Part shown: positions 20,231 through 51,804 of the stretch, one piece after another
Position numbering within the stretch: the stretch's first letter is position 1
Layout of the letters: every line of letters begins with the position of its first letter
NCBI GenBank assembly: GCA_026770705.1
Contig: JANJGN010000021.1
Coordinates: 105,090,001-105,154,000 of the forward strand
DNA: 64,000 nucleotides
Direction: 5' to 3'
Origin: Isurus oxyrinchus
Taxonomy: Eukaryota
Made by a program: the position numbers and the translations under genes
Notes under the pieces: generated by a model
The model's input: only the letters and a program-made list of their open reading frames with translations
Database searches by the model: none
Told to the model about the DNA's origin: nothing

Positions 20231-20233
20231 TAC

Positions 20234-22028: not shown

Positions 22029-22256
22029 TTACACCAACAGTTTTTCCATCTCAGTTGGAGGTCTCTTTGGCGCCCGTTTTTGATTCCTTATTTCACTACG
22101 TGGTCCCACGGCCGCATACACAACGGTGTCTTCGTCCCTTTGAGACGTCCGTGAGGGAGCACCCGCGCTTTGACCTTTCCTGTGATTCTCCGTACGATTC
22201 GTTTTGGATTTCACTACGCGCAGGTCAGCGTAAACAACATTGTTCGATGCACCTCC
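22029..22256 (-). CDS. gene A terminal exon with two ITIMs
   Basis: GGASNNVVYADLRVVKSK...DEDTVVYAAVGPR...LLV*; pyrimidine tract with an atypical GAG acceptor; overlaps ORF 22029..22214. Confidence 0.72.
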   Translation of the reverse strand, partial: GGASNNVVYADLRVVKSKTNRTENHRKGQSAGAPSRTSQRDEDTVVYAAVGPRSEIRNQKRAPKRPPTEMEKLLV

Positions 22257-25200
22257 CTCAAAAGAAACAAATAATAAAAAAAAAACATGTCTGGGTTAAT
22301 GCTGTGTTTGTTCAGTAGAATAGTGCGATTACTCTGGTAAACTGAAACCGAAGGAAACTATTTTTACAGCCAGGATTCTCCTCCGGTGTATTGCACAACA
22401 ATATTGAATGCAGTCGCTACTCAAAATCTCAGCCATTACCAAAATATTGGAGGGAAATTGCTTCAAGTTTGCCACTTACGGTTAATATGATTTATTTATG
22501 TTGTTATTCTAATTGCGCTGACATAAAATGAGATTTACTGTGCCTTGAGTGCTTTATTCCGTCAGTTGGTTGGCCTTGGACAGATTATTTTTAGTTCCAA
22601 ATATTACTGAAAAGTTGGTGTTCTACTACTTTCTGATTTCGTACGGAAATATGATTTGCAACGTTCTAATAATGTTTCCCATAGAATTTCCACCGTTTCC
22701 ACTACTGGATCACTACTGGTGCAGGATGAAAAGAGCACTGCCATTGTTGTAAATCACAGGATAAGTGCCAGTGTGTTATATTCCCACTCTTTCTAAAGTC
22801 TGGTTAACTCCACTTGAGATACAAATCCATCTCTTCAGGATTTAGTTTACCGAGCGTACAAATAAAAAGTCTTCAATATCTTCCGTCTATTGCTGAGCCG
22901 AATAAAAACATAAAACCTATTTAATTCAACTCCTAAAGGGTCTAATAATGGGAAAGGTAGAAATTCCATGGGACATATCATTAGCAACAGTGGAAATATT
23001 CAAGAATGAGTGGCGCCAAAACAGAATGTCCCTTTATCATGCGAGTAAACATTTTCCCTCGATTCCATAATCCCTTGGTTACTGAGGAGGTTCGATAGCG
23101 ACAGAACAGATCCTGAAATATATTTTCCATTGAATTCAATTCTTATGCGCGCAAGTCGTTGTGCAGGTAGCTGTTTGTTAATCGTACTTTATTCATTCCC
23201 TGCAGTCACTAGTTTTGGATTGTCAGTGCTGCCTCTTTATCGGCTTTTCATTGGTCAAATTCCTGCCTCGTCTGCTACAATCGGTTAATGTTTTATCCGC
23301 TCGAAATTCGATTTGGGCCGTAACGGAAATGAGCAGTATCGCATTAGCCGCCTGTCACCAATGAAGATGATTACAGGGCCAGGTCCATAACAAGGGGTCT
23401 GTGTGATATCACCCGTCATGTGCTGAGATTTGGAATCTGGATCCTAAGAAACCTTTATGTCCCGTGGCACCTCAGATTTTTACGTCCACATATATTGTTG
23501 TTACCATGGACATCTACTCTAAATCAATTAGTTAATTCTTTGTCTTTTTAGTATCTCATTTTGCCTTGCACCGGCATCCCTTTTACTACTTAATCAACCC
23601 TGATCTCCACCTGATCATAGACTTTCCGCTTTTTTATTTTTTCCCTCTCCTTCCGCACCGTCACCACACGGCTCTCTTGCTCGGCAGGGTGCTTGCTTAA
23701 AAACTGTTAAATCTCTAACTTTTTCCAGTTCTGATGAAAGGTTAGCGACATGAAACGCTCGCGTTATTTCTCAATCCACCGATGCTACCTCGCCTGCTGA
23801 ATGGTTCCAGCATTTTATGCCTCGACGCTAAATTATGTTGACCACTTAAATCTCTTTTCTGATGTTGCAACCAGAATTGGGTCGGAGGGAATATTGATTT
23901 CTTAGAAGGAATGAAAGAGCGTTTAAGGGTGTTGCTGGCATTTGACAAGCCGCAATGAGTGAAGAGAACATGGGGTGGAGCATAAAACCGTCTGACAATT
24001 GTACGCCTGCTTCTTTCTGCTGCTTAAGTCAAATCCCATTTCTTACCTGCTTTGAAATGGTTTCATGGCTAAGGGGGAGTTATGTTTCTAGTCCAGCATG
24101 AAAAGGACAACTAAGATGACGACTATGGGAAGAGATTATGTGATGATGCACCTGCAAACGTGGAGAGCATGACCCCAATGTAACGTAATAAACGACGCAC
24201 TAGCTATAGTTATCTGTCCGGCTCATGATTGACCATTCGTTTGAGCGTGCAGTTTGCTGTGGATCATAATCGTGGCTAATGTTTCAAACGTCGAATCATA
24301 GCAATGTAGAATTGTCCAGCATAGTAGGAGACCATTTGACCCATCAAAGAAAAACCCAGTTAGTCCCAATCCTCAACTCTTCTCCGTATGCTTGCATTTT
24401 TTACCCCTCAATTCTTTATGCAGTTTCTTTTTGTGAGCTATAATTAAACCTGTCTCTGCCACCCCATCAGGCTGTGCATCCCAAATAGTTACTTCTTGTC
24501 ACCTTTGGTTATTTTGGCTATCACCTAAATCTGATCCTTCAGGTAATCGACCGTTGAAAACAATTTCTCATCATTTACTCTACCGCATCCCTTTTACTAT
24601 TTTAAGCACGAGAAGCAAATCTCCATTTTGCTTTATAGATTATCATTGATTAATTTGCTACTAACTGTTTTACAGATACACTTGCTGATACCTTATTCTA
24701 AGTGTAGGACTCTGTCTTTGACAATACCCGAGTATGCTTAAAGCATGTTTATACATTAAGTTAAGTAATCTTGAAACGTAGCAGTTTCAGTAATTTTAAA
24801 ATACGAACTGGGTGTTTGAACAAATATCTCTTTCCAAACTGGCTGGTGGTCATTTGATTGATGAGTAACTGAAAGTTGTGAGACCTATCAACAATTGCAG
24901 TTGTCTGTAAAACCTCGATGAACTAAGCTATAAAGTATAACAGTGGTTAACTGTTGGATAAGACTAAAGAATACACAAGAACGGATGCCTCTGCAAAAGC
25001 TGGAGATCACTAGGAAGTGTCTTTGTATGAATGAACAAATAAACAGAGAATCGGATTTTAGCTCGGCCTGGGCATAAAGTGATTGGACGTATTGGGTGCA
25101 ATCTCTGCCTTAAAAAAAATAGCCGTTGGAAGCATTTGCGGGTCCCGGCCCTGCGTGGTCCGAAAGCAGAAACTTTCCTCGAGGTGACCAATTAAGAGGC

Positions 25201-28200: not shown

Positions 28201-31200
28201 AACCAATTCAAGCTCCGTAGAATTATCATTCAGAAGATTGGGTGGTGAAGCTAATCTGCGGCCTTAACTCGCGCCTTCATCTAAACTGAGATCTCGCCCC
28301 TGAATTTCATCGTGTGTAATTCTAGCGTGGCTTACCATTCTTACCTGTTCTTCCTCTCGAGTTCTCGATGTTCTCTCTAGAAAAATGTTTGAGATAAACA
28401 TGTCACATTGATGCGGCGAACAAAGTAAGTGGAATAAATGAATGTTTCACAAATGCATTGAGATTATCTCTGACTAAACAGAAGAAGCCAAAATACAAAT
28501 TCTGTAGTCAGGCTTGAATTCACAACCCTTTAAGGCGCAGGCGAGAGTGCCATCATCTGATTTGCAGGACCTCGAGGTCAATGCTGGCGTAATGACAATT
28601 TTACTGGACTCGTAATCCAGAGGCCCAGGTTATTGCTCTGGGGGCGCGAGTTCAAATGCTACCAAGGCAGCTGGTGGGATTTAAATTCGGGTAATTAATT
28701 CATCTAGAATTGAAAGCCTATCTCAATAATGGTGACCATCAAACCGTCATGGATTGTCACCAAAACTCATGTGGCTCACTAATGTCTTTTGGGGACAGTC
28801 GTTACACAGTGGGGCCTACGTGTGGCCCCAGACGCACAGCAATATGGTTGACTCTTGACTGCCAGCTGAAGTGGCCTAGTACGCCATTCAATTGTACCAC
28901 AGCACTACAGAAAAGGGGATGGACTGTACTCGTTCACCACCATCTTCCAGGGACAATTAGGATGGGCAACAAATGCCGGCCTTAGCAGAGATACTCACAC
29001 CCCACGAAAGGATTTTATATATAAAGAAAGAAAATACTATTGCATCCTGATGCTTACTATGGAGTAATGGTTTATTCTCTACTTTTTAGCTTTAAAGGCA
29101 TCAAGGCGTTTCATTGTCTATGTCACAGACCTTGGGCTTCCTGCTTAACTGGAACACCAACAGTGAATTTATAACTTTATGTCCAATTATACAACACATT
29201 TGTAAACTAATTGGTTGATACTGATTTTGAAGTTAGTCTGAAAGGTTCGCACGGCTGTCAGCTCCTGTTTAATTCGAAATCGAGCGGCTGTCTCTGCCGA
29301 CCATTAATCAATGGTATCACTTTGGCCTCCGAGTAAGAAGGTTGTGAGCTCCAGCCCTAATCCACAACTGTGTGCATAGAATCAAGCCCCACTCCACAGC
29401 TTCGAACTTAGAACCAAGCCCCAGCTCCCAAATTTGAACACAAAATCTGATAGTGCAGAAGGAGTGCTGCAGAGTCGGAGGTGCTGTGACTCAGGTGAGA
29501 GGTGAATCGGAGTCTAGGCTTGCCGTCTTACCCGAGGAGCTTTTACTCTGAATGCAAACGATCACTCACCAATACCCCGCGGACGAGCAGGGGAGTTCTT
29601 CCTAGTATCGCAACCAACATTGTTCCCTGAGGCAAGAAATCGTAAATAAATTACCTGATTATTATCACATTTCTGTTTTTAAGGACTTGCCGACATTTTT
29701 TTATAGCGTTTTAAAACTAGTTGGTTGAAAGTTGCCATGTGAGGTCACCAGCTCCTGAAACGTGCTGTACGTGATTGTGTAGCTGGCAGAGTACCAGGCC
29801 ATTTGGCCTGAAATGAGACAAGCTCTCTCTTTCTTTCTGACAATGATGCATTCAATGCCTAGCAGCGCTTCGTGCATTTCAATCTAAAGCTATGTGTAAC
29901 CCCCAAAATATTTGTTCACCTATCGCCACCATGATATATGTAATAGTTACCTTGATGCTTGCAGCGACGCCAGGTGATAAGAACTGCGGTTAGCAGCAGC
30001 GATACAATGACCACCAACAGTGAAGAGAAAATGACCAAGATGTGCTGTGCAGTAGTTCTGTCGTGTACAGCTGTAGAATATAAAACGATTACTATTAGTG
30101 ACATCCTAGGTTTTTTTGTCAATGCAGCGCCAAATGTTTGGGTCATTGTAAGATCATTTTTTAAAATAAATTAAGTATTTAGCTTCCCTTTCAACTACTT
30201 TAATTTGCTGGGGCTCTTTTGCGTTTTGCGGAGTTATGTAAGATCATATGAATAAGTTTACATGAGAGTGCGTGTCCTGTAGTAAAATGGCGGCATCAAC
30301 TCTGATTCAATTACCTTGGAATAATCGAGGATGCTACCTGGCGAATTAGCTGCGACAGAGGTTATAAACGCATGCACATGCATTGATTTTAAGATGTACC
30401 CATGGGTGAATAGTTTCGTTTGCACGCATATTTACATATCATCATCAAGCCAAGGTTGCACATTTAGTGATAACAGGCTAAATAAAACAGCGAAGTCTCC
30501 TAAAGATTGACCAGTCTGAACAAGAACAATAATAATAAATAACATTTCTTTCATTTTTTGACACAGAGTCAATGAAGGAAAAAATAAGGATAGATGGCCA
30601 GAAGCTTGATCAAAGAGCTTTGTTTTTACAAGCAGTTTAAGCGAAAAGAGAGAGAAGAAGGGAGATTGAGGTAGGGAATTCCAGACCCAAGCACCTTGGC
30701 AGATTGTGCAGGGCTGCCAATAGTGAACGGTTAAAATCGGAAGGCCAGAGTTGCAAGAGGATATATATCGCAGAGGGCTACAGGGCTGGAAGGGTGAATA
30801 CAGATAGGGAGGGAGGAAGACATGGAGGAATTTAAATATAAGTACGAGGATTTTAAAGTTCTAATGTGTGGATGCAAATGAAGTGTAACAAGCGGAGGAA
30901 TGATTAGTGAATGAGATTGTGAGCGAGTTCAGTTACGAACAGTAGATTTTTTGAATAAACACAAGATTACGTAGGATTGAAACATGTAACGAATCGGGAT
31001 AGTCAAATCTAGAGATAACGAAGGCATGGATGAGGATTAGCATTAGACCCAGGGGTACCCGGGAGGTGGAAATAGACAATCATGGTGATGGTACGAATGT
31101 GTAGTTGGAAACCCAACTCGGGGTCAAATAATGCACCAAGGTTGCGAAATGTCTTACTCAGTTTAAGATAATTATCGCCAATGGAGGCGGTGGACATCAA

Positions 31201-34061
31201 AGGAATTGTATTGCGGGGCCCGAAGACGATGGCTTCAGTCTTCACAATGTTTGGTTGCAGGAAATAGCTGCTCATCCAGTTTGAAGAATTAGAAAAAAAT
31301 GCATGGGCCCCGGGGGAGGTGATGATGAGTGTCAATGGCATACATCTGGAACGTACTGCTGTGTTTTCGAGTAATCTCATCGAATTCATGTTCAAGAGAA
31401 GAAAGAAAGTCGGGGACATTTAATTTAATTAAAGAACAGCTAGGCTATATTTTCTATGTATGGTAAATCCTAACAAGCGTGTAAAAATGACAATCCGACC
31501 AGAAAAATACAAAATATCAAATAGAATGAAATATGGTGAATCAATTTACACATTTAATCATGTGTTTCTGGTTAATAGAAAATGAAGTTTGCATTTTACG
31601 CTTTTATGGAGTACGTGTTAAGCAGATTATTTAAGTATAGAATTTAATAAACGGGCATTAATCTCCAGGGATTCGATTTGTATAAATCTTCTTTATAACC
31701 CTTATCTGAGAGTTATCGAGTGGATGTTGGAGGGATAAGTAGTTGAATGTTTTGTTGAAAAGAATTAATGCAAAGAAGGACAGATATTAGCACAATAGAA
31801 CCGTACCTTCTACTGTTACCTGTGTGCCCATCCCGGTTCCTTTGCCAAACTGAAATGATTCTATTTCACAATAATATATCCCTGAATCATTCTGGCTTGC
31901 GTCCATGACTGTAATTTGATTCCGTCTTAAAGATATTTGATTTTCCTCCAAGACTCTACCAATAAATTCTCCAGATTTGTTCATAACTTTACAGCTTTCA
32001 TCACCCAATACTTCCTTGTACCACGCGACGGCAAACAGTGCTGTCGTTTCAGGTGTAGTAAATGTGCAGGAGATTTGAAACTCCTCTCCTTCTGTTATTT
32101 TGATAACCCGTGGGCTTTGAGTTACTTTGATATCGGCAGCAGCAACAGCTGAAAGACAGATAAGCCAATTACTCTCGTTAGACAAATCTACTCCGCATTT
32201 CAATCTACCTGTCCTGATAACTCGCAAATAACTCAGATGCGGCTAATGGCGAACTCAAACAAGGAACCCCTATTTGAATCCCCTGATTTTCAGTGGCAAC
32301 ATGACTATCGAATCTCCTACCATCAGCCTTTTTGCTGTCACCGCTTCTTTCTCCCCTTGCAGCCTTTAACGCTGAACTGAAATTTCGTAATCACATTCAA
32401 ATTCTTGAGATCTCCACAAACAGGTTCAGCTATAGCTAATTCTATTCACTACACATGTTATGAAGAAATTGCTGAAGGTCCTGAATAGATCAAAGGCGAT
32501 GGGACTTGATAACATTCAGGCTCTGGCGCTGATGACTGATGCTCCAGAACTAACCGTACCACAGGAATGGAGGAATTAGGAGCAGGAGGAGGCTATTTTA
32601 CCCCTCGAGCGTGCTCCGCCATTCGATAAGATCATGGCTGATCCACCTGCGCTCCACGTTACCTGCCTGCCGTCCCCATAAGTCCTCAGTGATCAAAGAT
32701 CTGTGTAGCTCAGCCTTCAACAGATTCAATTACCTAGTCCCCACTTCTCACTTGGGAAGAAAATTCTCCAGCATACCGACCCTCTAAGATAAAAAAAAAT
32801 CTCCTCACCTACGGACTTAAATTGGAGACCCATATATTTTAAATTGTGTCCCCTGGTTCTAGACTCGCCCACAAATTGAAAGGTCCTCTCTGCATCAACC
32901 ATGTCGAGGCCCCTCAGAATCTTATGTCTTTCAATAAGAGGGCCTCTCATTGTTTTAAAATCCAATGGGTGTAGGCCCTTTTCCAAAGATACCTTTAAGC
33001 CAAACTGTGCAAGTATAGCTACGAAACTGTCATCAATCCGGCTCTGTGGAAATTGACTGCCTAAGGCCTGTCCACAAGAAGTGAGACAAATGTAATCCAG
33101 CTAATTACAGGCCCAATACACTACTCTCAATCATCAGTAAATCGGCTGCAGTTACATCATTGAACATTGATATAAAGGAGCATTTAATCAGCATGAACCT
33201 TCTCAACGTTCAGGCTTGGGCTGCTAACTGACAAGTGACCTTCACAACACACAATTGATTAGCTAAATCCAAAAAGAGAGAATCGTCCAAAAAGAGAGAA
33301 TCTAACCATCCCCACTTAACATCCAACGGCGTTATCAACACTAACTAACCCATAACAACACCCCGGATGATATTGTGGACCAAAGATCTAACTGGATGCC
33401 CCACAAAGGTCAAAGTTTTGGATTTCTGAGGTGCACAACTCACCCGCTGTCTCACAAAAGTCTGTCCAACATCTGCAACGCACAAGTTTGGATGGAGCAA
33501 ATCCCACTTGCCTAAATGAGTGCTGCTTCAACATCACTCAGGACGATTGGCATCACCCAGGACAAAGCAGCCCGCTTGATGGGCACACCATCAACCAGCT
33601 TAAACATTCAGCCACTCTACCACTGGTGGGCAGTGTCAGCAGTGTGTACTATCTACAAGATGCACTACAGCTACTCTCCAAGCCTCCTTCTACAGCACCT
33701 TCCAAACCCTGCGACGCCTACCACCTCAAGAGAAAGAGCAGCAGAGGCATGGTAACACTAGCACCTACACATTTACCTTGAAGTTATACACCAACCTGAC
33801 TTAGAATAATATATCCATCCCATCATGTCTCTGCGTGGAGTACTTGGAACTCCCTTCTAACAGCACTATGGTGTACCTCTACTACTAGGGCTGCAGCAAT
33901 CCAAGAAGGTGGTTCGCCACCACTTTTTCAAGCACAATTAGTGTGCAATGCTCCCTTGCCAGTGATGCCCACACCCCATTAACGAATATAAATATTTGCT
34001 TCAAATAAATTAAAGGCTTACCAGAAATCAGCAGGACACCGAGTATCATATCTGGATACAT
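22029..34061 (-). CDS. NCR3: NKp30/NCR3-like V-type Ig receptor, inhibitory form (gene A); join 34022-34061, 31807-32148, 29951-30070, 28345-28376, 22029-22256; ~253 aa
   Basis: All exons have GT-AG ends and compatible phases (1,1,1,0), giving an open 762-nt CDS: leader MYPDMILGVLLISAVAAA, V domain, uncharged TM, and a tail with VVYADL and VVYAAV. The V domain resembles NKp30 as I recall it (V.N...EF.GR; CEIESFQFGKGTGMGTQVTVE vs CRVEVLGLGVGTGNGTRLVVE). The symbol means NCR3-like; orthology is not tested. Confidence 0.75.
25690..26110 (-). mobile_element. old Penelope-like RT fragment
   Basis: Reverse complement resembles 18380-18760 (MDVQSL, LLLT.LNMFS, WYIDNF). Confidence 0.6.
27565..27870 (-). 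mobile_element. CR1-type LINE 3' end
   Basis: RNFFAQRVANLWNSL (ORF 27658..27873) and CR1 3' UTR. Confidence 0.8.
28345..28376 (-). CDS. gene A exon 4, short cytoplasmic exon (ERTSRTREEEQ)
   Basis: Acceptor catttttctag, donor CAG|GTAAGA (a second in-frame donor lies 9 nt on); converts phase 1 to phase 0 as the ITIM exon requires. Confidence 0.6.
29310..29775 (+). mobile_element. Deu-domain SINE (SacSINE1/AmnSINE1-like), decayed
   Basis: ggagtgctgcagagtcggaggtgctgtgactcaggtgagagg resembles the Deu core as I recall it; related minus-strand copies at ~34850-35240 and ~52655-53000. Confidence 0.55.
29951..30070 (-). CDS. gene A exon 3, stalk plus uncharged transmembrane helix
   Basis: Acceptor ttttatattctacag, donor G|GTAACT; AVHDRTTAQH-ILVIFSSLLVVIVSLLLTAVLITW-RRCKHQ with a basic stop-transfer. 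Confidence 0.85.
30560..31420 (-). mobile_element. old L2-like LINE fragment in the gene A V-TM intron (paralogue at ~46320-47210)
   Basis: NWMSSYFLQPNIVKTEAIVFG, RNLGALFDPELGF in ORF 31009..31419. Confidence 0.65.
31807..32148 (-). CDS. gene A exon 2, Ig V-set (VJ-type) domain
   Basis: Acceptor tctgtctttcag, donor G|GTACGG, 342 nt; canonical C...W...DSGIYYC and GxGTxVxV G strand. Confidence 0.93.
32565..32980 (-). mobile_element. CR1-type LINE 3' fragment
   Basis: KILRGLD, ESRTRGHNLK in ORF 32726..32986. Confidence 0.75.
34022..34061 (-). CDS. gene A exon 1, signal peptide (MYPDMILGVLLIS)
   Basis: ATG at 34061, 40 nt, phase-1 donor G|GTAAG; paralogous exon at 51765-51804. Confidence 0.8.
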
Positions 34062-35677: not shown

Positions 35678-38338
35678 AATGTGGTACTGGACTATGGACA
35701 GATTTAGAGATAAGGAGTCGAATTTCCAACTCGGCTCATTGGCGAATCGAAAGTCAATGCAAGCCGTTCTTACCTGGTCTGGCCTACATGTGGATCGAGA
35801 CCCACAGCAATGTGGTGACTCTTAACTGTCCTCTGAAATGGCCTAGCAAGCCACTCCGTTCAAGGAAAATTAGGGATGGGCAACAAATGCTGTTCTTGTC
35901 AGCGACACCCACATCTCCTGAATGCATGAAAGATTTCGAACTTCCATTTCTCGATAATGGTTTTCCTATTTTACCAATTAGCACAATCGAACATTAAGCA
36001 GATAAATTCTGAACATGACCGGTGCTTTAATAAAGGGAAGAGCTAGAGAAAAAATGCACTTACTTTTATGTGTTTAGCGAAGCGTATTATTTGCAGAGTT
36101 TCTCCTGGTCTGTGCTGTAGCAAAATTATTTACAGAATGCAATCGGGCAGCTTGATGTTTTACAGCATTGAAAGAGGCTTGTCAGCATTTCCTTGAAGAG
36201 CAAGAAAAGAGGATGAGAAACGGAGGATGGTATCTTATGCAGGCTACATAACGCTATATGAAAGGTCACTGAACATATGAACGTGGGAAACGATTCCCAT
36301 GTAGTTCTTAAGCAAATTTCAAGCAATGCATGATACTTATTTTTGGTAAATGTGAAATAAGATGTTTCATTCCTGTCATTGTAAAGTACGTACGCAGTTC
36401 ACTTTTTAAGTGGAGAAACAATACAGAATGAAACTCTTATTTAAGTCACAACCTTCAAATGTTTGCTAATAAGCTGTTGCAATTTCATGGCTTCGGTAAA
36501 AAATCGATTTATGAAATACTAGTGAAATGATCAAAATAACCAGACACTTAATCCGAAACTTAAGTTACCACAGAAGCAAAGATTGCGAGAATCCTTAAAT
36601 TTCAGTATAAGTTGAGCAGTGATATTTAAGGAAGTGGTTAAACTTTAAACCTCACCCTTTACCAACATGCGAATGTAAAAGCAGGAGCAGCCCATTCAGC
36701 CCCTCGAGTCTGATCTGTCATCGAATAATGTGGTACTGGACTATGGACAGATTTAGAGATAGGGAGTCGAATTTCCAACTTGGCGCATTGGCGAATCAAA
36801 AGCCAATGCAAGCCGTTCTTACCTGGTCTGGCCTACATGTGGATCGAGACCCACAGCAATGTTGGTGACTCTTAACTGTCCTCTGAAATGGCCTAGCAAG
36901 CCACTCCGTTCAAGGAAAATTAGGGATGGGCAACAAATGCTGTTCTTATCAGCGACACCCACATCTCCTGAATGCATGAAAGATTTCGAACTTCCATTTC
37001 TCGATAATGTTTTTCCTATTTTACCAATTAGCACAATCGAACATTAAGCAGATAAATTCTGAACATGACCGGTGCTTTAATAAAGGGCAGAGCTATAGAA
37101 AAAATCCATTTACTTTCACATGTTTAGCGAAGCGTATTATTTGCAGAGTTTCTCCTGGTCTGTGCTGTAGCAAAATTATTTACAGAATGCAATCGGGAAG
37201 CTTGATGTTTTACAGCATTGAAAGAGGCTTGTCAGCATTTCCTTGAAGAACAAGAAAAGAGGATGTGAAACTGAGGATGGTATCTTATGCAGGCTACGTA
37301 TCTCTATATGAAAGGTCACTGAACATATGAACGTGGGAAACGATTTCCATGTAGTTCTTAAGCATATTTCAAGCAATGCATGATACTTATTTTTGGTAAA
37401 TGTGAAATAAGATGTTTCATTCCTGTCATTGTAAGGTATGTACGCAGTTCACTTTTTAAGTGGAGAAACAATACAGAATGACACTCTTATTTAAGTCACA
37501 ACCTTCAAATGTTTGCTAATAAGCTGTTGCAATTTCATGGCTTCGGTAAAAAATCGATTTATGAAATACTAGTGAAATGATCAAAATAACCAGACACTTA
37601 ATCCGAAACTTAAGTTACCACAGAAGCAAAGATTGCGAGAATCCTTAAATTTCAGTATAAGTTGAGCAGTGATATTTAAGGAAGTGGTTAAACTTTAAAC
37701 CTCACCCTTTACCAACATGCGAATGTAAAAGCAGGAGCAGCCCATTCAGCCCCTCGAGTCTGATCTGTCATCGAATAATGTGGTACTGGGCTATGGACAG
37801 ATTTAGAGATAGGGAGTCGAATTTCCAACTTGGCTCATTGGCGAATCGAAAGCCAATGCAAGCCGTTCTTACTCGTTCTGGCCTACATGTGGATCGAGAT
37901 CCACAGCAATGTGGGTGACTCTTAACTATCCTCTGAAATGGTCTAGCAAACCACTCCGTTCAAGGAAAATTAGGGATGGGCAACAAATGCTGTTCTTGTC
38001 AGCGACACCCATATCTCCTGAATGCATGAAAGATTTCGAACTTCCATTTCTCGATAATGTTTTTCCTATTTTACCAATTAGCACAATCGAACATTAAGCA
38101 GATAAATTCTGAACATGACCGGTGCTTTAATAAAGAGCAGAGCTATAGAAAAAATCCACTTACTTTCACGTGTTTAGCGAAGCGTATTATTTGCAGAGTT
38201 TCTCCTGGGCTGTGCTGTAGCAAAATTATTTACAGAATGCAATCGGGAAGCTTGATGTTTTACAGCATTGAAAGAGGCTTGTCAGCATTTCCTTGAAGAA
38301 CAAGAAAAGAGGATGAAAAACTGAGGATGGTATCTTAT
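35678..38338. repeat. tandem duplication, period ~1050 bp, ~2.5 copies
   Basis: Units start aatgtggtactgg at 35678, 36727 and 37777; near-identical copies. Confidence 0.95.
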
Positions 38339-39905: not shown

Positions 39906-42543
39906 AAAATAACCACTCCTTTCACACCACCACTATTCTGACTGACCTGTTGTAACAATTTTTGAGGCAGCGATAAACATTGACATGTCACGCGCTTCAG
40001 TCCATCTTATCCTTTGCTCTCTGCATAATTATTCCTTTATTTCTACCACCAGAACAGATGTTATGTGTTTCTAATAAATTCCTAATGGCGAGATAAATAT
40101 GCTGAAAGGACCAATAACAATAACGCGATTATACATGCGCAATCTGATCCTATTATCTAATGTCCTTTCATTCCGCTTCCCCTTAAAACAATAAATGTGG
40201 CCGACTCCATTTTCATCTTTTGTTTTAATATTTTGTTATCGACTATAAAATCCAGGAAATGCATTCGCGGTTGGAAATCGCCTGGGTGCCATATGAATGG
40301 CCAGTGGACTAAAGGGCGGAGGGAAGTGATGTCATGGAGGTGGAAGGAAGGAATCGCCATGATAAAGTGGATATTTGTGTCCGAGGCTCAAGGCTAGGTA
40401 ACGTAGGATGCCTTGGTTGAGAGTAATCTGGTGGGGGACCTCAGAGGCAGTGAGAAAAGGGTTTTTCTTTCACATTCCCGTCTCAGTTTCTATTCACGTG
40501 ACACTTCAGCGTATTCCTTTGTCAAAACTTGCTTTCAAACAAAGCGGGAAACACCATTGCAGCCGCACAGGTTACTGAACAAGTTGATGTGTATTATTTG
40601 ACATTACATACAAATTGCATGAAGAATCAGGGCAACTACTCGGAACAAGATGAAATATTGCCTGCAACTTTCTCAGATCCATCACTATTAAACTAAAATG
40701 GAAATCACATTCTAATTCGTGGATCAAGGTTAAGTTGGGGAATTTAGCTATTAGATACCCACTAAACATGCCAAAACATATAGTTTTATATTCAACTGTA
40801 AGTGATTTTTTTTTGATTGTGATAAGTCTTAATTACTGCCACAGAACTCCCCTACACTGAGAATTTTAGTTTTCCAATTGTGGGGTCTGATTCCTTCAGG
40901 GTTTGGTTATTGTTGACTATGCCTGCAAAAGTATTGTTTCTTCGTTTTTCTCTCGTTGTCTCTTAATTTCATCTGTCACTTAGTTTCGCTTTCTGTATCT
41001 GTTATGGCATTGGACTAAATATCGCTTTTTACACTTTCTGTTTCAGGTCCTTTGTGTCTCAGTAAAGATTCTTTACAATTGCTTGATTAAAAGATACACA
41101 ATTGCTTTCCCTGTTCACAGAGGTGCCATATCCCTAGCCACGCACAGAGAAAAAACTGGAATCACTTTAAGCAGCCATGTTGAAGAACTTTCTTCACAAG
41201 TCCCGAGCAGAAAGGGCAGCCGAGAGGCCAGCTTATAATGTGCTACACTTCTGTAAATGGAACTGCTGCTGTTTTCAACTGATACTTACTGCATGTTCGA
41301 GTGGAAAGCCCTGTAAAATGCTTGAGGACAAGCCCAAGTGCGCTATTGTTTCAGGACTGATCTCAAAATCCGTGGCGTTTAATTCATGCTCAAGAAATAA
41401 TATATATTGATTTAATTTTTTTAACATTGAATATTAATTACATGAAGGTTCATTGAAAATTCTAGGAGGAAATCGGAACATTACTCTAGGTTGATTACAA
41501 TTAACTCATGTTGACCAGAACTATAATTGGTTGATAAACGTCAGCTTGTAATGTCTAATTTATACGTGTGTAGTTTCTGCAAGGGCTTATTATGCATAGC
41601 CGTGGTTTGTGGGACCGGGGGTGGGGATGGTAGGAAGGGGTGGTGGGGTGTTGGCGGTGGGGAATTGCAAGTTTAAAATATCTGCTCAAGTTAAGTTAGA
41701 GAACATTTTGATCAATTTGTCAGAGGGACACAGATTGTGAAATGGCAAGGCCGCCAATTTTGCAGAAACCGCGACATGCACCAGAACCCAAAACGGTGAT
41801 TCATTTTGTATCAACTGGACTTCTCCAAAATGTAGTTTTAATACCCTTTAAGCAAATTGATGAAGCGGCATGACATAAAACCAAAACTGTTGAGGGGGCT
41901 TTCCTGAGTGCAGTGCTACATTGCACCCAATGACTGCCTTTTCTTAACAGCTACTTACTTTTAAATGCTTAAGGGCTTACAGCGAAGATCATAAGAAGTG
42001 GTGGACTGGACCCCGCAAACTTGCCATGTAGCCACATGAAAGAAGATTAACCAATAAGTCACAGGTGGCGTATTTTGAACAACGCTCATCTTTCTCAAAG
42101 GATAATAAAATCAGAACAATGAGGTGATGTTTAAACCAGCTGTTGTGCAATCTTGCAACATTAGGTTGGCTTACGATTAGGCTGCTTTACGCTGACTGTT
42201 CTTCTGAATTCTGGTTCAATAAAAATATGCACTACAAACAATAAACAGCTGCTAAAGTTTTTTTAGATCTTCGTGGGCTAGGCTGACTTTGAAAGGGGCT
42301 GATTGTCGATATCTGTTGCTAGGCCTAACGCAAAAATGATCACCAGCCACAGACCCAGGGACATTTTTTCAGATATGTAGGTATAGAAGCTGCTTCCAGG
42401 AGGTACGATTAATACTCTTTCAGTTGTTGATATTTACAGCTGCAAATTCAGCTAGTTTAAAAGGCAAAAAGTTGTCTTGTCGATCAGAACTGAAAAATTT
42501 ATTAGACGGATTTGATAGTAACGAAGTTGCAGTACTGGATCGG

Positions 42544-43455
42544 TGTTATGAAGTGGCAGATGATGTGTGCCTGATGGACAAACCCCCAAGGGAAACTGGG
42601 TCGCGCTATCACAACCGTTTTGTAATTGGTATTTATTACGAGAAGATTTGCCCACTGAATTCCGAAGTAATGAGCCCACCAAGACCGTTAGAGATATCAA
42701 AAAATGAAATTAAAGCATTTATTAACAAAATAAAAGACTTCAAGTACATACACAAGACTACAATTACTTATTACAATAACAAATCCTGAATTCCCAATTT
42801 ACCTGACTCCCAGTTACATTTTAAGGCAACAGCCCAAAACAAAACCTGCAAGTAACACAATATCTACTTAACAGTGGAAATCCAAATGGCTTCCCCAGCT
42901 TCAGTTACCTTGCATAGCAGACTTAGGCACAAGTGGCCAGAGGCTTCTTGAAGGCTGTTTCACACACTCTTGTTAGATCTTACACGGCCCTCTCCTCACA
43001 TAGCCTTTGTTCCTCGTGTAAATATGTTTATTTATCTTTAATATTTAAATTCTATTGTTCCATATGTCTTTGAAACTCTTGCTCATAATACAAAATCTTT
43101 AATGTTGCCAAAATTGTCAGTAACCTTTGGGAAAAATAAACAGACTTCTCAGCCTTGTTTATCTGGCTAATTGTAAACAGATGAGCATGCCTTTGAAATC
43201 CAAACAATCCCTTCATTTACCTAAAAAAAATGAAAATTCCCTTCGCACCTTACATTCTAAGCCGGCATCCATGTTTACTCATACATATTTCAAGCACATT
43301 TCTGCACCTAGCTTCTTTTGATAATTCCAAGCTTGCAATCTACTTAATTCCAAATGTAATTAAATAACACCGATAGACCCAACTATGGTCGCCCCATAAA
43401 CCTATTTTACAATAAACCAGTAAAATATTATGAAAGTTATTAAACTTTCGTCACA
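42544..43455 (-). mobile_element. solo LTR, same family as 20234-21724
   Basis: tgttatgaa ... ttcgtcaca ends; absent from the paralogous site at ~62650; no clear TSD. Confidence 0.7.
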
Positions 43456-45124
43456 GCAGTGACCCAGACATCACAAGTTCTCTATTCCAACAGGGAAACG
43501 TTAAAATTGGAAAGAATAAATCAGGCAATTTCCGTGCTGGTATAGGGAAATAAAGAGTATGACCGTTTTCACATTGCTGTAAAAACGCACAAGGACGGGT
43601 AAACAGCTATAATTCCTCAACCTGGCCTCAGTGTGACGCGGACCCTACTTGAGTAGCAACAAAAGATAACACATATTTCATATAATGCCCTCGGGTGAAC
43701 TCGGGTTGCAAGAAAGATGCAAATTCGCCGGCGTTGGCCACGTCCCAGGAACAAATGCAAACATTTTCAGAAGATGATGTGCATCTGAAACATTCATTGA
43801 TTCAAACTTCTTCGCAACCACATTGTTTATTTAATTGATTTTGAAAATGTCGATAGATTGACAGATGGATGGATGGATAAGTGGCAGCAGATTCTAATTT
43901 GTGATGACAAGAACATGAACTAGGTAAGAATAATTCGTAACATGGTGGCAAAGAAATATTTAAAAAGAATAATAGTAAGGATAAAGCAATGAAATAATTT
44001 CACTATTATAATAATTTCAGCAGGCAAATAAACTACAATACGTTGCAAAATACAGATCTCCTTAATTTACAGAATATAAATGAACGTTCTACATAAAACG
44101 GCATTTTATTTAATGTTCATAGCTGATACATTGCCAGAATGAATTGACTTGAGTTTTCAGCCTTTGCCTGAGACTACAAATCTTAAACTTTTACATAGAT
44201 TTGCTCAGAAACGCTTGTAACTCATAATATTCGTCAGAATCAGGCTTTTACAATATTGCTCAAGTCAATATCGGTTACTTATGTCTTGCTTAGCTTGGAT
44301 TGATGCTGCTGATTGTTGTGCGCATGCGCGCCTTTGTGTTGTCGACATAGCATTTACCTTACTTTGAAGGGGTTTGTCAGCAGCGTCCTCTTCAAAAGTC
44401 AAAATCATCAGAGGGAGAGAGTAACGGCCAAAAACGCTTACAAGGCGTAAAATTAAAATTCTCCGTTTCAGACGTGTTACCGTGATTCGAGTTTCAGGGA
44501 AGCATTTGCCATTAAATTGTTTCCCCACGAAGCAGACACCTTCACCATGCTGCGCAATAGAATAGCAGTTTGAACTGCAGAGGTGCATGCATGTAAATTA
44601 TGTAGCACATATTTATTTTTAAGAGTTATGAAAGATGCAACTCAGTAAGTGACCGCTTACAGTGATAACTGCTCTACTTGTGCGTTCACAGTGGTTTTCT
44701 GTTCTTAGGCCATTGATGTTACATGCCTCTTGTCACCAGTTCCTGTCTCCGCTAGAAAAAAAGACGATATGGTATAAATATCTTAGCATGTGTTGACGTC
44801 AGTTTTGCTGTTTTAGTACTTAATAGTTAAAACTATTCAAAGTGGGAACCTGGGACATACCAAATTTACCATAACTGCAGCTTTCAATGAACGAGTTTAA
44901 TTACTACAATATCACCGAATGTAATGTTTTGACAGTAAAACGTTCCAATATAAAAGCGCAAGAAGATAACGGGGGACATATAAACTTACCGGAACACAAG
45001 TGACTTTACGACATACTATGCACTATTTTTGAGTTTGCATTTGACAACTGGAATCATTCCACAGAAAATTTCACTTAATAATCAGCAGCCAATACAAGCT
45101 GTCCAAAATGCCAGTCGGCTTAGT

Positions 45125-45330
45125 TTAACGTTTTACCATGGAACACGAGCCGGCTGGATCGGCTTCCTCTCGCCCTGAGGTGAATGCCATAGGAGAACTT
45201 CGAGATTCGCAGAAATATACGAGAAAAATTGTTATCGTGATAATAACGGCAAACACTGCAAATTTCACTCCCATCACCATCAGCTGCCAAAGCAGCGAAT
45301 GCCCGCTGACACTACCGAATTCCATCACAC
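45125..45330 (-). CDS. gene B exon 3, Lys-containing TM plus short cytoplasmic tail
   Basis: Acceptor ctgtctctttctccatag, in phase with the V exon; matches ORF 45125..45328. Confidence 0.8.
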
Positions 45331-48300
45331 CTATGGAGAAAGAGACAGCTCAATTTAGCAATGACTTTATTTAGTTCACTCCAGCAGTGCATCGCAATAA
45401 TCACCAAGTGCGTTACTTATTCCCTTGTGCAGTCGGGCAGACAGATTGTTCCGATTAGGTACCTGCGCATTCGGAGTGGTATTCTAGACATCTAACTTTG
45501 TACTAATGATTCGTCTCGAGTCCTTCTTGTTCGTCTTGGATTCTGGCGTTGATTTTCTATCTTATTTCTCAATCGCTTACCCACCCCTTTAGTATGTGAT
45601 AATCCAAAGCATTGAGCAAAGTTTGCTTCTGGTGAAGAAAGGTTATTGAAATTATGAGCTTTATAAGATTAATATATTTTGGGACAGTAGCTTTAAGCTT
45701 CACGTAAATGATGGGGCTATGTGACCCATTCTGCAATCTGCCTGAAATTAGGCCTGCGTGGTTTGATTGTTAGAGTTCAAATGAAGGCTTAGGTTGTTTT
45801 AATGAGTATAAGGTACAAGGTATTTACGCTTGGAGCCAATATCTCTGAGTTAACAATGAATGGACTCTGAGTCCCCCAAAGTCCCAGAAAGGTATTGAAG
45901 GCACCAGGTTGTGTTCTGTACCGTCCATTTGCCTCTAAGGTGAAAGGGACTTGACGCCAAAAATAGCTAATTATCATTTCTCACTAGTTACAGGCTAATA
46001 TGTTTCATGGTCCCAAGGGAAAAGGGGCAGAGAAACCATTTTGAAACCAGTTTAAAGGCTCCCCTTCAAATCATTGGATATCACAGACAGATGGCAGTTC
46101 CGTGTGGTCAACAAGCTGAAGAGGCTGCTTGGCTTTGTGAGATAGTGAAGCCGGATAAAGGAGGGAGACGATCACTGGCCGAAGAGATGATTCTTGTCGC
46201 CTAGATATGGGCATTCGAAGTTTCTTTGGGGTTGGGCAGCATTGGAAGCTGGGAGCAACTGTGGACTGCTTCCTGAAAGGGCTGTAATTCTGTGAGGTGG
46301 TTCTAACAAGTGACTTATGAGAAAAGAGAGAAAGGTGGAGATGTTGGCGGAGGGAATTCCGGATCCTGGGACCTTGGCAGATGAAGGCACGACTGCCAGT
46401 ATGGAACAATTAAAATCAGGATGCCAGTGTTGCAGGAGGGCAGCAATAGCAGAGCGCTCCAGGGTTAGAGGGGTTAGTATTGATAGGGAGAGGGAGAGCC
46501 TTGGCAGAACTTGAATTCACGGATGAGTGTTTTTTTAAATAGAGGCATTATCGGACAGAGCGCCAATGAAGGTTAGCAAGCAGATGAGTGATTAGTAAAT
46601 GAGATTGTGAGGGAGTTAAGCTATGAAGAGGAGAGGTTCTTTTTTTGGATGAACACAGGATTATGTAGAATGAAAGATGAAATGAGTTGGTATAGTTAAA
46701 CCGAGAGATAACGAAGGCATGGGCGAAGATTGCAGTAGCAGAAATACTAAGGTAGATTTCGAGCCGAGGGATATAAAGGAGGTGGAAATATTCAATCATG
46801 GTGATGGTGCCAATGTCTAGTTAGAAGCCTAAGCCGGGGTCAAACAAAGCACCACGGCTGCGAAATGTCTTGCTCAGTTTAAGGCAATTACCGCCAGTGG
46901 GCATAAAGGCGGGGAACGGGGGTGGGGGGGGGGGGGGGGGGGGGGGGGGGTGGGGGGGGGGGGGCGGGGAAGGAGGAGGGGAGGGGGGGGTGGGTGGGAT
47001 TGGCCGAAGGCGATGGCTTCAGTCTTACCAATGTTTAAATGCAGGAAATTTCTGTTCACCCAGTTTGAAGAACTGGAAACAATGGTAAGACTCAAGGAAG
47101 TAATGGTGAGATTCAAATGACAGTTATCGGCATGCATGTCGAACCTATTGTTGTTTTTGCGGATGACCTCGCCGAATTCAGATTCACGAGAGGAACAGAC
47201 TGAGAGAGAGTTCATTTACCTAAATAATAGCCGAGCCAATATATAAATACAGGGTAAATTCTAGGAAGTGTGTAGAAATGGATAATCCGCTCCGAAAAGT
47301 CCAAACTCCAAAATGTCAAATAGATTCAAATCCGATAAATCAATTTACACATTTTATCATATGTTCCTGGTTATTAAAGAATTAAGTATGAAGTTTACGT
47401 TTTAACGGAGTACATATTAAGCAGATTATTTAGCCACAGAATGTATTAAATGCGCATTACTTTCCAGGGATTCGAAATTTGTAAACCCTCTTTATAACCC
47501 TTATCTGAGAGTAATCGAGTGGATGTTGGAGGGATAAGTAGTTGGGAGTTTTATCGAAAAGAATAAATGCAAAGAAGGACAGGTGTTAGCACAATAGAAA
47601 CGTACCTTCTACTGTTACCTGTGTGCCCGTTCCGGTTCCTTTGCCAAACTGAATTGATTCTATTTCACAATAATATATCCCAGAATCATTCTGTCTTGCG
47701 TCCATGACTGTAATTTGATTCCGTCTTAAAGATATTTGATTTTCCTCCAAGACTCTACCAATAAATTCTCCAGATTTGTTCATAGCTTTACAGCTTTCAT
47801 AACCCAATACTTCCTTGTACCACGCGACGGCAAACAGTGCTGTCGTTTCAGGTGTAGTAAATGTGCAGGAGATTTGAAACTCCTCTCCTTCTGTTATTTT
47901 GATAACATGTGGGCTTTGAGTTACTTTGATATCGGCAGCAGCAACAGCTGAAAGACAGAGAAGCCAATTACTCTCGTTAGACAAATCTACTCCGCATTTC
48001 AATCTACCTGTCCTGATAACTTGCAAATAACTCAGATGCGGCTAATGGCGAATGCAAAGGGCGAATCCCCAGCTACATCCCCTGCATTTCAATGGCAACA
48101 TGGCTATCGAATTTTCTACCACCAACCTTTTTGCTGTCACTTTCTTCACTTGCAGACTTTAACACAGAACAGCAACGTCGCGGGAACAGCGTCACATCCA
48201 TGTTCTCGTCCAAATAGCAGGTTATATATTGCGTCCTTTGACCCTCGCTGAGTCAATTTGCTTGTAAAACGTCAAGGTTCGCAGTTGTTCGCAGTGAAGT

Positions 48301-51300
48301 TCCGGCACTGCTTTACCCGTTCAAAGAACAAAGAACAACGAAAAGCATAGCATAGGAACAGGCCCTTCAGCCCGCTAAGCCTGCGCCGATCATATTGCCT
48401 GTCAAACTAAAACATTTTGCACTACCGGGGTCCGAACCCCTCTATTCCCATTCTATTCATGTATTTGTCAAGCTGCTTCTTAAACACCACTATCGTACCT
48501 GCTTCTACACCTCCTCTGGCAGTGAATTCCAGACACTCACTACGCTCTGCTTAAAAAACTTGCCCCGCACATCTCCTCTATAGTTTTCTCCTCTCACCTT
48601 AAATCTATGTCCCCTAGTAATTGACTCTTCCACTCTGGGAAGAAGCTTCTGACTATCTCCTCTGTCTATGCCACTCATAATTTTGTAAACTTCTTTCAAG
48701 TCGCCCCTCAATCTCCGTCGTTCTAGTGAGAACAATCCGAGTTTCTCCAACCTCTCCTCATAGCTAATAACCTCCAGACCAGGCAGCATCCTGGTAAACC
48801 TCCTCTGCACTCTCTCCAACACCTCCATATCCTTCTGGTAATGTAGGGACCAGAATTGCATGCAATATTCCAAATGTGGCCTAACCAAGGCTCTATACAG
48901 CTGCAGCAGGACTTCCCAACCTTTATACTCAATAACCCTGCCAATGAAGCTTCTGACTACCTTATCTACATGCGTTGCCACTTTCAGTGACCTGTGGACC
49001 TGTACACCCAGATCCCTCTGCCCGTCGATGAACTTAAGGGTTCTGTCATTTAACTGTATAATTCCTGCCTGTATTGGACCTTCCAAAATGCATTACCTCG
49101 CATTTGTCCAGATTAAACTGCATCTGCCATTTCTCCGCCCAAATCTCCAACCGATCTATATCCCGTTGTATCCTTTGACAATCCTCTTCACTATCTGCAA
49201 CTCCTCCAACGTTTGTGTCGTCTGCAAATTTACTAATTAGCCCAGTTACATTTTCCTCCAAATCATTTATGTGTACTACAAACAGCAAAGGTCCCAGCAC
49301 TGATCCCTGTGGAACTCCACTAGTCACAGCTCTCCATTCAGAAAAGCACCCATCCATGATCTTGAGCAAATAGTACGTTATATATTGAGTCCTTTGACCC
49401 TCGCTGAGCCAATTTACTTGTAAAACGTCAACGATCGCAGTTGTTCACAGAGAAGTTCCGGCACTGCTTTACCCATTCAAAGAAGACTATAGGAGAACAT
49501 GCCAAGATTATCATCAGACAAATTTAAAGAGGAGGCGCCAATCTGGTGAAGACAGTACAAGGGAGTGCATGCAAGCTAAATAACGGAAGCAACATAGTGT
49601 AAATAGCCATAAGGTATCCAAAACCAATGGATTAGATAAAATCTCGGCAGCGCTGCCAAATCCACAAGAAACTGCGGGTCGAGGCTCTACAACTATTCCT
49701 ATTATAAATGATGGAGAGTTCCGCCCATCAGCGCAACAGTTAGGATTGAAACGTTTGCAACCACCTCCGCCCAGAAATGTGAAGCGGCTGTTCTGTCTGA
49801 GACCCCTCCTGAGGTCCCCGCCGTCACAAACGCAAGTCTTCAGCCAGTTCGATTCACGTGATATCATGAAATGGCTGGAAGCACTAGATGCGGCAACAGC
49901 CATGGGATCTTCTGCTTGCTGTTGTGCTGATGATTTATGCTCCCGATCCAACCATGTCTCGAGCCAACCTGTGCTAGTGCAGCCACAAAACTGGCATCCA
50001 CCCGACCCTATGGAAGCTGTATTCCTGAAACCTGTCTGTGGAAAGAAGGACAATTGCAGTCCAACTAATCAACACCCCAACATTCTACTCTCAATCATCA
50101 GCAAATAGATGAAAGATACACCATTCAGCAGTGTTATCAAGCAGCCGAATCAGCAACACGCTTCTCAATTTAGGTTTCATCTGGACCAGTTGGCTCCAGA
50201 CATCATTACAACCTTTGTCCAAATAAGGTCAAAAGAGTTTAGTTCCAGTGGTGAGGTACGAGAATTTGCCCTTGATATCAGGTCAGTATTTAACCGAGCG
50301 TGACAACAGGGAACCCTGGCAATATTGAAGTAAACGGGAATCGGGGTTGGGGGTGTGGGTAGGGGGGAAACTCTCCACTGTATGGTGCCATGTCGACCTC
50401 AAAGCAAGATTGCGGTGGTTGTTGGTCTCACGGTAGAGGATGTTCCTCTACCCACTGACTGCCCACTATTCGTTTCCAATCCAAACCTAGCAGATAACAA
50501 AGCAAACCGTGTCAGTATGCATGAAGGCCTGGCCAATATTACTACTTGGGCTGAGAAATGACAATTAACATTCACGCCACAGAAGTGCTTGGCAATGCCC
50601 ATCTCCAAAAAGAGAGAATCTAAACATCTTTCCTTAACATTCAACAACATTACCGTTGAATCCCCTAACAAAAACTTCCTGATGGTTATAATTGACCAGA
50701 GATTTAACTGAGCGAGCTACATAAAGGTTGTGGCTACAAGAGCAGGTCAAAGTCCGGGAACTCTGAGGTATCCAACCTACTTCTTGACTCTTGACTGTTC
50801 AACATCTGCAATGCACAAGTCAGCACATTGATAGGATTCCCGCTCCTTGCCTACATGACTTCAGTCCCAACAGGGTTCAGATGTTTGGCATCCCCTGGGA
50901 AAAGGCATCCTGCTTTATCACCATAGATAAAAGCAAAAAACTGTGGATGCTGAAAATCCGAAACAAAAACAAAAATACCTGGAAAAACTCAGCAGTTCTG
51001 ACAGCATCTGTGGAGAGGGCTAGTTAACGTTTTGAGTCCGTATGACTCTTCACCAGAACTAAGGAAAAATAGAAAAGAGCTAAAATATAAGCTGGTTTAA
51101 AGGGGGTGGGACAGGTAGATCTGGATAGAGGGCTAGTGATAGGTGGAGATTGCCAAAAGATGTCATAGACAAAAGGCATCACCATCCCATTGATCACCAT
51201 GCACATTGGGTCCCCCTACACTGGTGCACACTGAAAGCAATGCATACTATCTGCAAGATGCACTGCAGCAACTCTCCAAGCCTCCCTCTACTGCACCTTT

Positions 51301-51804
51301 ATACCCACGACCTCTACCACCTCAGGAGAAATGGGCAGCAGGTGCATGATAAAACAAGCACCTGCATATTCACCGCTCACTTGCACATCATTCTGACTTG
51401 AAACGCCATAGCATACAGGGCTACGGGCCAGGTTCTGGAAAATGGGATTAGAATAGATAGGTGCTTGATGGCGGGCACGGACACGATGGGCCGGAGGGCC
51501 TGTTTCTGTACTGTGTGGCTCTATGCCTCTATGACTTTATGACTTGGAACTAAATTTCCATTCCCTCACGAAGCTGGGTCTAAATCCTTGGACTCCACCC
51601 CCAACAGCACTATGGGTTTACCTCAACCACAAGGATCAGAACGCGTCAAGATGGCGGCTTACTGTTACCTTCTCATGGGCAACTGGTGTGCACTTAATGT
51701 TCGCCTTGCCAGTGATGCCTATTAACGAATGTAAAGAAATATTGCAAATAAGTTCAAGACTCACCGGAAATCAGCAGGGCACCGATTATACTTTCCGGAA
51801 ACAT
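45125..51804 (-). CDS. NCR3: NKp30/NCR3-like V-type Ig receptor, activating form (gene B); join 51765-51804, 47606-47947, 45125-45330; ~195 aa
   Basis: Phase-1 GT-AG junctions give an open 588-nt CDS: leader MFPESIIGALLISAVAAA, V domain, TM LLWQLMVMGVKFAVFAVIITITIFLVYF containing Lys, and a short tail without tyrosine motifs. The symbol means NCR3-like. Confidence 0.78.
46917..46998. repeat. G-rich low-complexity tract
   Basis: Long G runs; length may be a sequencing artefact. Confidence 0.85.
47606..47947 (-). CDS. gene B exon 2, Ig V-set (VJ-type) domain
   Basis: Same splice sites and 342-nt length as the gene A V exon; 9 nt and 6 aa differences by manual count. Confidence 0.93.
48322..49355 (-). 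mobile_element. CR1-type LINE, 5'-truncated, in gene B intron 1
   Basis: ORFs 48505..49086 and 49046..49369; same subfamily as 13751-14823. Confidence 0.93.
51765..51804 (-). CDS. gene B exon 1, signal peptide (MFPESIIGALLIS)
   Basis: ATG at 51804, 40 nt, donor G|GTGAGT. Confidence 0.8.

Follow-up and report, generated by a model that had tools for sequence, protein, structure and literature searches.

Can one locus of a shark hold two neighbouring genes that see the same ligand and signal in opposite directions? The question is raised by a 64,000-nt stretch of DNA from Isurus oxyrinchus (contig JANJGN010000021.1, positions 105,090,001 to 105,154,000; referred to below as the window), in which two adjacent minus-strand genes, here called A and B, carry nearly identical immunoglobulin (Ig) variable (V) domains of the VJ type and end in unrelated transmembrane (TM) and cytoplasmic segments. 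Gene A has an uncharged TM segment and two immunoreceptor tyrosine-based inhibitory motifs (ITIMs); gene B has a lysine inside its TM segment and a short tail. In our judgement, both are probably expressed tandem members of the NCR3 (NKp30) family of elasmobranchs and together make up a matched inhibitory/activating pair.

The two genes lie 15.8 kb apart. In each, the V domain is encoded by a single 342-nt exon ending in FGKGTG(M/T)GTQVTVE, which represents a germline-joined, J-like G strand. The near-identity of these exons, pointed out in a first-pass annotation of the DNA, amounts to 333 of 342 nt (97.4%), and both score as Pfam V-set (E ~1e-11). The nine nucleotide differences account for six changed residues and two synonymous codons among 114 codons, and the encoded domains are 95-96% identical. 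In exon-translation numbering, the changes are R14H, D50Y, V55A, S85R, F99I and M107T. When mapped on the strands of the AlphaFold model, they fall at the A/A' kink, in the C-C' loop, in C', in the E-F turn, at the end of F and in the G bulge; the model places four of the six on the GFCC' side, through which V domains commonly bind.

Gene A spans positions 34061-22029 of the minus strand and encodes a product of 253 aa without internal stops, all splice sites being intact and all frames open. The product is identical at 231 of 253 positions (91%) to the great white protein P0001 (XP_041068171.1, "natural cytotoxicity triggering receptor 3-like isoform X4", 253 aa), which has the same exon chain. 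The exons and optional elements of gene A are the following.

34022-34061, minus strand: leader exon, 40 nt, with the ATG at 34061 (MYPDMILGVLLIS) and a phase 1 donor; aligns to the gene B leader; 12 of 13 residues as in P0001.

31807-32148, minus strand: V exon, 342 nt, phase 1 in and out, encoding a VJ-type Ig V domain that ends in FGKGTGMGTQVTVE; Pfam V-set E 1.4e-11; 99 of 114 residues as in P0001.

29951-30070, minus strand: stalk and TM exon, AVHDRTTAQH followed by ILVIFSSLLVVIVSLLLTAVLIT; uncharged; phase 1 donor; 38 of 40 residues as in P0001.

29570-29626, minus strand: candidate optional cassette exon, 57 nt (GNNVGCDTRKNSPARPRGI), phase 1 to phase 1, with AG and GT sites intact; 16 of 19 residues as in the insert of great white isoforms X1/X2 (P0005).

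28345-28376, minus strand: micro-exon, 32 nt, ERTSRTREEEQ, phase 1 to phase 0, with a good acceptor and a good donor; 11 of 11 residues as in P0001.

28336 (stretch 28336-28344), minus strand: second GT donor of the micro-exon, adding 9 nt; gives the VRM form found in great white isoform X3 (P0003).

22029-22256, minus strand: cytoplasmic tail exon with the ITIMs VVYADL and VVYAAV and the stop codon; starts in phase 0; 71 of 75 residues as in P0001.

The uncharged TM segment and the two ITIMs can be read in 30070-29951 and 22256-22029 just as first proposed, and the individual exons of the original chain stand. The direct join of the TM exon to 22256 had to be given up: the phase 1 donor of the TM exon does not fit the phase 0 start of the tail exon, which puts this join out of frame, and continuity is obtained only through the 32-nt micro-exon at 28376-28345 that bridges the two phases. 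The 11 extra residues that P0001 carries between TM segment and tail are exactly those encoded here. An AG at 22253, considered as an alternative tail acceptor, also restores the frame, but the great white orthologue uses the micro-exon. The great white counterpart of gene A is XP_041068168-171, either as its orthologue or as a very close paralogue; micro-exon and alternative exons are shared as well. Since great white isoforms X1-X3 use the cassette exon or the tandem donor, both of which gene A keeps, several cytoplasmic isoforms are likely, all of them predicted to retain the ITIMs; the segment at 29570-29626 is thus a candidate optional exon in gene A of Isurus oxyrinchus. The cytoplasmic part contains only two tyrosines, each within an ITIM and 38 residues apart. 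Among relatives, those in great white, horn shark and sawshark preserve both ITIMs, and those in rays preserve the second.

Gene B spans the region from 51804 to about 43100 on the minus strand. Its splice sites, too, are intact and its frames open, and its 202-aa product has a cytoplasmic part of 35 residues, none of them a tyrosine. The exons could be followed in assembled transcript contigs from four runs (X1-X4) of one sample, which inform on presence and on joints.

51765-51804, minus strand: leader exon, 40 nt, with the ATG at 51804 (MFPESIIGALLIS); present in contigs of runs X1-X3 as a loose end joined upstream of the V exon.

47606-47947, minus strand: V exon, 342 nt, phase 1 in and out; Pfam V-set E ~1e-11; covered by transcript contigs and joined to 45330.

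45137-45330, minus strand: exon for stalk, TM segment and proximal tail, beginning SLLWQLMVMGVKFAVFAVIITITIFLVYFCES; lysine inside the TM segment.

43100-44751, minus strand: last exon, coding from 44751 to 44719 (RRQELVTRGM and stop), then 3' untranslated region (UTR) to about 43100-43300.

The TM segment reads LLWQLMVMGVKFAVFAVIITITIFLVYF, with the lysine near its centre, within LMVMGVKFAVF. The joints from V exon to TM exon (47606 to 45330) and from TM exon to last exon (45137 to 44751) were found in four of four runs, with GT..AG ends on the minus strand. The acceptor at 44752 was likewise used in all four, and contigs run unbroken from 44751 down to 43305 or 43113. A single contig of run X1 runs from leader B through a B-type V exon and the TM exon into the last exon, and contigs of runs X3 and X4 extend through 44751-43773. 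The precision of the GT..AG joints argues for the contigs being derived from complementary DNA (cDNA).

These contigs also settle the end of the protein. The lysine and the short, tyrosine-free tail noted at first pass hold, but the C-terminus suggested by the open reading frame (ORF), MVKR followed by a stop, does not. The donor ATG/gtaaaa, three codons ahead of the ORF stop, is used; contigs splice 45137 to 44751 in all runs, and the coding sequence therefore ends in ADPAGSCSM/RRQELVTRGM and a stop. The string ERTSR at about 44684, considered as a relic micro-exon of gene B, was rejected as a chance match, since it lacks an acceptor site and the DNA shows no homology. In the most distal part of the gene B 3' UTR (42797-43194), contig depth rises to as much as 775, against about 7 for gene B; this probably reflects a dispersed repeat transcribed from many loci.

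Transcript contigs of both genes were found in the same sample. Those of gene A are loose ends only: leader A is joined to a V exon in run X4, and the start of the TM exon to the 3' end of a V exon in run X3, with one mismatch. Comparison with RNA, to which both exon chains had been put forward at first pass, thus bears out the full chain of gene B (four of four runs) and, through loose ends, the leader-to-V and V-to-TM steps of gene A, the remainder of which is taken from the great white model.

To assign the genes to a family, homology and fold searches were run exon by exon; joined exons served only for frame checks and for per-exon identity to P0001. When a single V exon was compared with PDB entries, NKp30 chains (3NOI, 3PV6, 6YJP and 9FWW) were the best single-domain matches (E ~2e-8). 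A profile of 16 family members gave NKp30 78.8 bits (E 5.5e-21); a shark VNAR followed as the next single-domain chain with 54.9 bits, a gap of 24 bits. The entries that this profile ranks above NKp30 are multi-domain antibody constructs, the individual domains of which reach at most 35 bits. The family label given to the V domain at the outset therefore survives: among solved structures, no single-domain chain matches the profile better than NKp30. The G strand shows a doubled GxGTGxGT pattern, FGKGTGMGT in the window and LGVGTGNGT in the mammalian NCR3 sequence P0139. A HMMER scan of 1.84 billion representatives with the gene B V domain returned shark and ray relatives together with NCR3-like proteins of newt and sturgeon; possum and hamster NCR3 were retrieved by the V exon alone, within the top 150. 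Relatives in great white, catshark, stingray and sawfish are named NCR3-like.

One could argue that "NKp30-like" is a habit of annotation and that the domain belongs to some other VJ-type group of the Ig superfamily (NITR-, SIRP-, CD28- or pIgR-like). Some relatives are indeed automatically named SIRP-beta-2-like, pIgR-like, IgSF11-like or cd79b. The AlphaFold model of the V exon has a V-type fold (predicted local distance difference test score 90), and Foldseek, run against the PDB, finds the V fold without discriminating between families, NKp30 ranking sixth among antibody, T-cell receptor (TCR) and VNAR V domains. In a tree of 38 V domains, the window genes fall in a starred clade with the great white and catshark NCR3-like proteins, the deep nodes being poorly supported and no outgroup being included. 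Against this reading stand the 24-bit lead of NKp30 in the profile search, the doubled G-strand pattern shared with mammalian NCR3 and the homology of the lysine-bearing TM exon of gene B to that of the published nurse shark NCR3; we regard it as very improbable. Taken together, the comparisons support the placement of both genes in the elasmobranch NCR3 (NKp30) family.

How the two V exons came to be so alike can be judged from the DNA around them. In a self-comparison of the window, homology between A and B starts in the 5' flank, takes in leader and V exon and continues over about 1.2 kb of intron 2, stopping well short of both TM exons (blocks 30637-32377 against 46315-48170, plus upstream patches, with the leader region at about 72.5%). 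Relics of the other gene's TM or tail exons were sought in both genes and none was found, in agreement with the initial claim that these exons are unrelated. Identity around the V exon is distributed as follows.

31757-32253, minus strand (partner 47556-48052): candidate gene-conversion tract, of high identity, that encloses V exon A; 497 nt with 15 differences.

V exon, A against B: 333 of 342 aligned columns identical.

Intron, 70 nt upstream of the V exon: 69 of 70 identical.

32298-32219: 64 of 80 identical.

Upstream of 32300: 93 of 167 identical (56%).

Intron, 50 nt downstream of the V exon: 46 of 50 identical.

Next 100 nt downstream: 86 of 100 identical.

Following stretch downstream: 118 of 157 identical (75%).

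Stretch after that, downstream: 205 of 309 identical (66%).

Because the flanking intron is as alike as the exon and identity decays on both sides, which coding selection alone would not produce, we infer that the tract of about 500 bp centred on the V exon arose by gene conversion. The two V domains (95-96% identical to each other, 87-89% to the great white orthologue) are sisters in the V-domain tree (support 88/78), with great white next (94/99). We further infer that the genes duplicated long ago, the signalling half being exchanged in the process, and that the binding exon was homogenised afterwards. A different account would attribute the likeness of the V exons to strong purifying selection, or to a very recent duplication of a V cassette, rather than to recurrent conversion, and would see in A and B mere neighbours, functionally uncoupled, within a large expanding family. 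With only nine nucleotide differences, the ratio of nonsynonymous to synonymous change (six against two codons) says little about it. The similarity of the adjoining intron, falling off on both sides, is not explained by coding selection, however, and a single copying of a V segment of about 500 bp into an older gene would itself count as conversion. Moreover, the same combination of a lysine-TM and an ITIM member, with a V region 91% identical, recurs in the sawfish. We consider this account quite unlikely.

The case for opposite signalling signs is made by the modules that follow the V domain. The lysine-bearing TM segment of gene B is identical at 19 of 32 positions to nurse shark NCR3 (QTT61904.1, P0043), at 22 of 35 to a bamboo shark protein (counting the FCES that comes next) and at 17 of 27 to a stingray NCR3-like protein (59-63%). 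In V-domain identity to the window genes, by contrast, the nurse shark and stingray proteins reach only about 35%. Such conservation, extending well beyond that of the ectodomain, argues for an intramembrane partner of the lysine-bearing segment. Both signalling modules are old and already public: a second nurse shark NCR3 deposit (P0166) combines a TM segment free of charge with the ITIM-like motifs LPVYSTV and LTYAQV, and in a stingray the ITIM form P0055 groups with the lysine-TM forms P0081 and P0112 (support 99/98). A protein homologue search with the lysine-TM region of P0043 returned the query itself as the only match. A lysine-TM protein of bamboo shark (Chiloscyllium plagiosum), P0167, is 82% identical to nurse shark NCR3 and publicly named "cd79b"; it looks like a mis-annotated member of the NCR3 family.

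Gene B might nonetheless not be activating. It could act as a decoy or ligand sink that is dead for signalling, or else partner another membrane protein, with the lysine serving assembly rather than coupling to an immunoreceptor tyrosine-based activation motif (ITAM). Its tail has no known motif, and mammalian NKp30 uses arginine instead of lysine, so that the adaptor of gene B cannot be read off by homology. On the other hand, a central TM lysine together with a short tail is a hallmark of ITAM-adaptor coupling, as in KIR2DS, NKp44, TREM and SIRP-beta, and a TM segment that sharks and rays have conserved far more closely than the ectodomain is what one expects of an intramembrane partner interface. 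We hold a non-activating gene B to be unlikely.

The locus thus has the architecture of paired receptors, as had been recognised from the start: the genes are neighbours, their ectodomain exons are 95-96% identical, and an ITIM tail is opposed to a charged TM segment with a short tail. Both marks of this design class, an ectodomain more than 90% alike in neighbouring genes and the combination of an ITIM member with a charged-TM member devoid of signalling motifs, are present in the predicted products. If A and B do form a matched inhibitory/activating pair, their mode of action may be outlined as follows. With nearly the same VJ-type V domain held on a very short stalk, both receptors are expected to see the same ligand or closely related ligands. 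Ligand binding would lead to phosphorylation of the gene A ITIMs and recruitment of SH2-domain phosphatases of the SHP-1/2 type, and activation would be damped. The TM lysine of gene B would pair with the TM aspartate of an ITAM adaptor of the DAP12, FcR-gamma or CD3-zeta type. After a presumably older duplication, the shared domain would be kept alike by gene conversion across some 500 bp with the V exon at the centre. The six residue differences, mostly on the C-C'/F-G side, might tune affinity between the two receptors; in several mammalian pairs the activating member has the lower affinity.

Several points weigh against this interpretation. The signalling polarity and the shared ligand of genes A and B are read from sequence. 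The transcript sample is a single one, labelled only "RNA? (a guess)" and available as contigs only. For gene A, the joins from TM exon to micro-exon and from micro-exon to tail rest on the computed model of the great white orthologue. The V-domain tree has no Ig, TCR or CD28 outgroup, and a lysine-type partner of the A/B V lineage was not found among great white proteins. Finally, one contig of run X4 (47606-47953) is mixed: it starts with leader A, continues with a V exon whose 5' half is A-type (variants at 47908, 47907, 47801 and 47785) and whose 3' half is B-type, and goes on to the TM exon of gene B, and contigs therefore cannot cleanly assign V variants to A or B. Its simplest reading is a de Bruijn assembly chimera, since 90 nt of identical sequence separate the switch points; alternatively, it may be an allele with a different conversion tract.

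The surroundings of the pair consist of repeats, and the window contains no ligand gene. Three tandem copies of a 1050-bp unit, 96-97% identical, occupy 35678-38338 between the 3' end of gene B and the leader of gene A, and a diverged partial copy lies at 54975-55607. Segments at 62723-63654 and 60236-62616 are 68-75% similar to 40000-44443, that is, to the gene B 3' UTR and the DNA downstream of it; another lysine-type gene may therefore have its last exon or 3' region at or just beyond the end of the window. Weak tail-like matches at 62385-62546 and 42557-42718 were rejected, their translations being full of stops. Retroelement debris is represented by copies 88-89% identical at 8705-10979 and 17964-20231, and at 13756-14802 and 48322-49354. 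Reverse-transcriptase-like ORFs occur at 48505-49369 (minus strand) and 57471-59674 (plus strand), and one repeat copy sits between the leader and the V exon of gene B. G-rich low-complexity runs (GGGGxGG...) are found at 46870-47090, in intron 2 of gene B, and at 54394-54663, upstream of the gene; positions 46910-47003 were left out of the contig mapping as a repeat. A run of 225 N at 3395-3619 marks a gap or masked sequence.

As regards novelty, the family and both of its forms, with TM lysine and with ITIMs, are already public as nurse shark NCR3 deposits and as NCBI NCR3-like models in several sharks and rays. A literature search on NKp30 with ITIM, shark or paired, which covered the shark NCR3 papers only in part, returned nothing relevant. 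The pair described here does not define a new category: it is a paired receptor inside the known elasmobranch NCR3 family, like the pair in a ray, and what it adds are corrected exon models and a mapped tract. As such, the locus is a clean, transcript-supported case of a shark family apparently organised as a matched inhibitory/activating pair in which the binding domain is homogenised. Expression constructs and ligand screens can draw on its exact exon models, which include the phase-converting micro-exon and the true C-terminus of the predicted activating member. A broader proposal, possible rather than probable in our view, is that the elasmobranch NKp30 family evolves as ligand-matched pairs in which conversion confined to the V exon repeatedly re-synchronises ITIM and lysine-TM genes, in the shark and independently in the sawfish. 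NKp30 is, to our knowledge, the one natural killer (NK) cell receptor conserved from sharks to humans. If the proposal were true, the paired-receptor arms race of KIR, Ly49, PILR and Siglec-5/14 would already have been acting some 400 million years ago on the oldest conserved NK receptor.

Compared with other members of the elasmobranch NCR3 family, the window genes have the same single germline-joined VJ-type V exon and short stalk, and the lysine-TM exon of gene B is homologous to that of nurse shark NCR3. They differ in that the locus is unannotated in the collection searched and its two signalling types are direct neighbours, their V exons being 97% identical and the identity tract mapped. 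With mammalian NKp30 (NCR3; 3NOI, 3PV6, 6YJP) they share the VJ-type V domain with its GxGTGxGT G strand, the short stalk and, in gene B, a positive TM residue. Mammalian NKp30 is a single activating gene whose TM arginine couples to CD3-zeta/FcR-gamma, whereas in the window the residue is a lysine, an ITIM-bearing twin is present and sequence identity is about 27%.

The sawfish (Pristis pectinata) offers the nearest parallel in design. One contig encodes a lysine-TM NCR3-like protein, P0165 (178 aa, WQMLEMGVKLAIF), and an ITIM protein with an uncharged TM segment, P0164 (295 aa), likewise named NCR3-like; their leader and V regions are identical at 116 of 127 positions (91%). The sawfish is a ray, however, and its pair belongs to another V lineage, about 30-35% identical to the window V domains, which suggests that pairing arises or is maintained repeatedly in elasmobranchs. 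Adjacent genes with near-identical ectodomains, one with an ITIM tail and the other with a charged TM segment and a short tail, are likewise the rule in KIR2DL/2DS, PILR-alpha/beta, SIRP-alpha/beta, Siglec-5/14 and the teleost NITRs, and the ectodomains of Siglec-5/14 are homogenised by gene conversion. Those receptors belong to other Ig families, and the predicted likeness of genes A and B to them lies in the design and not in common descent.

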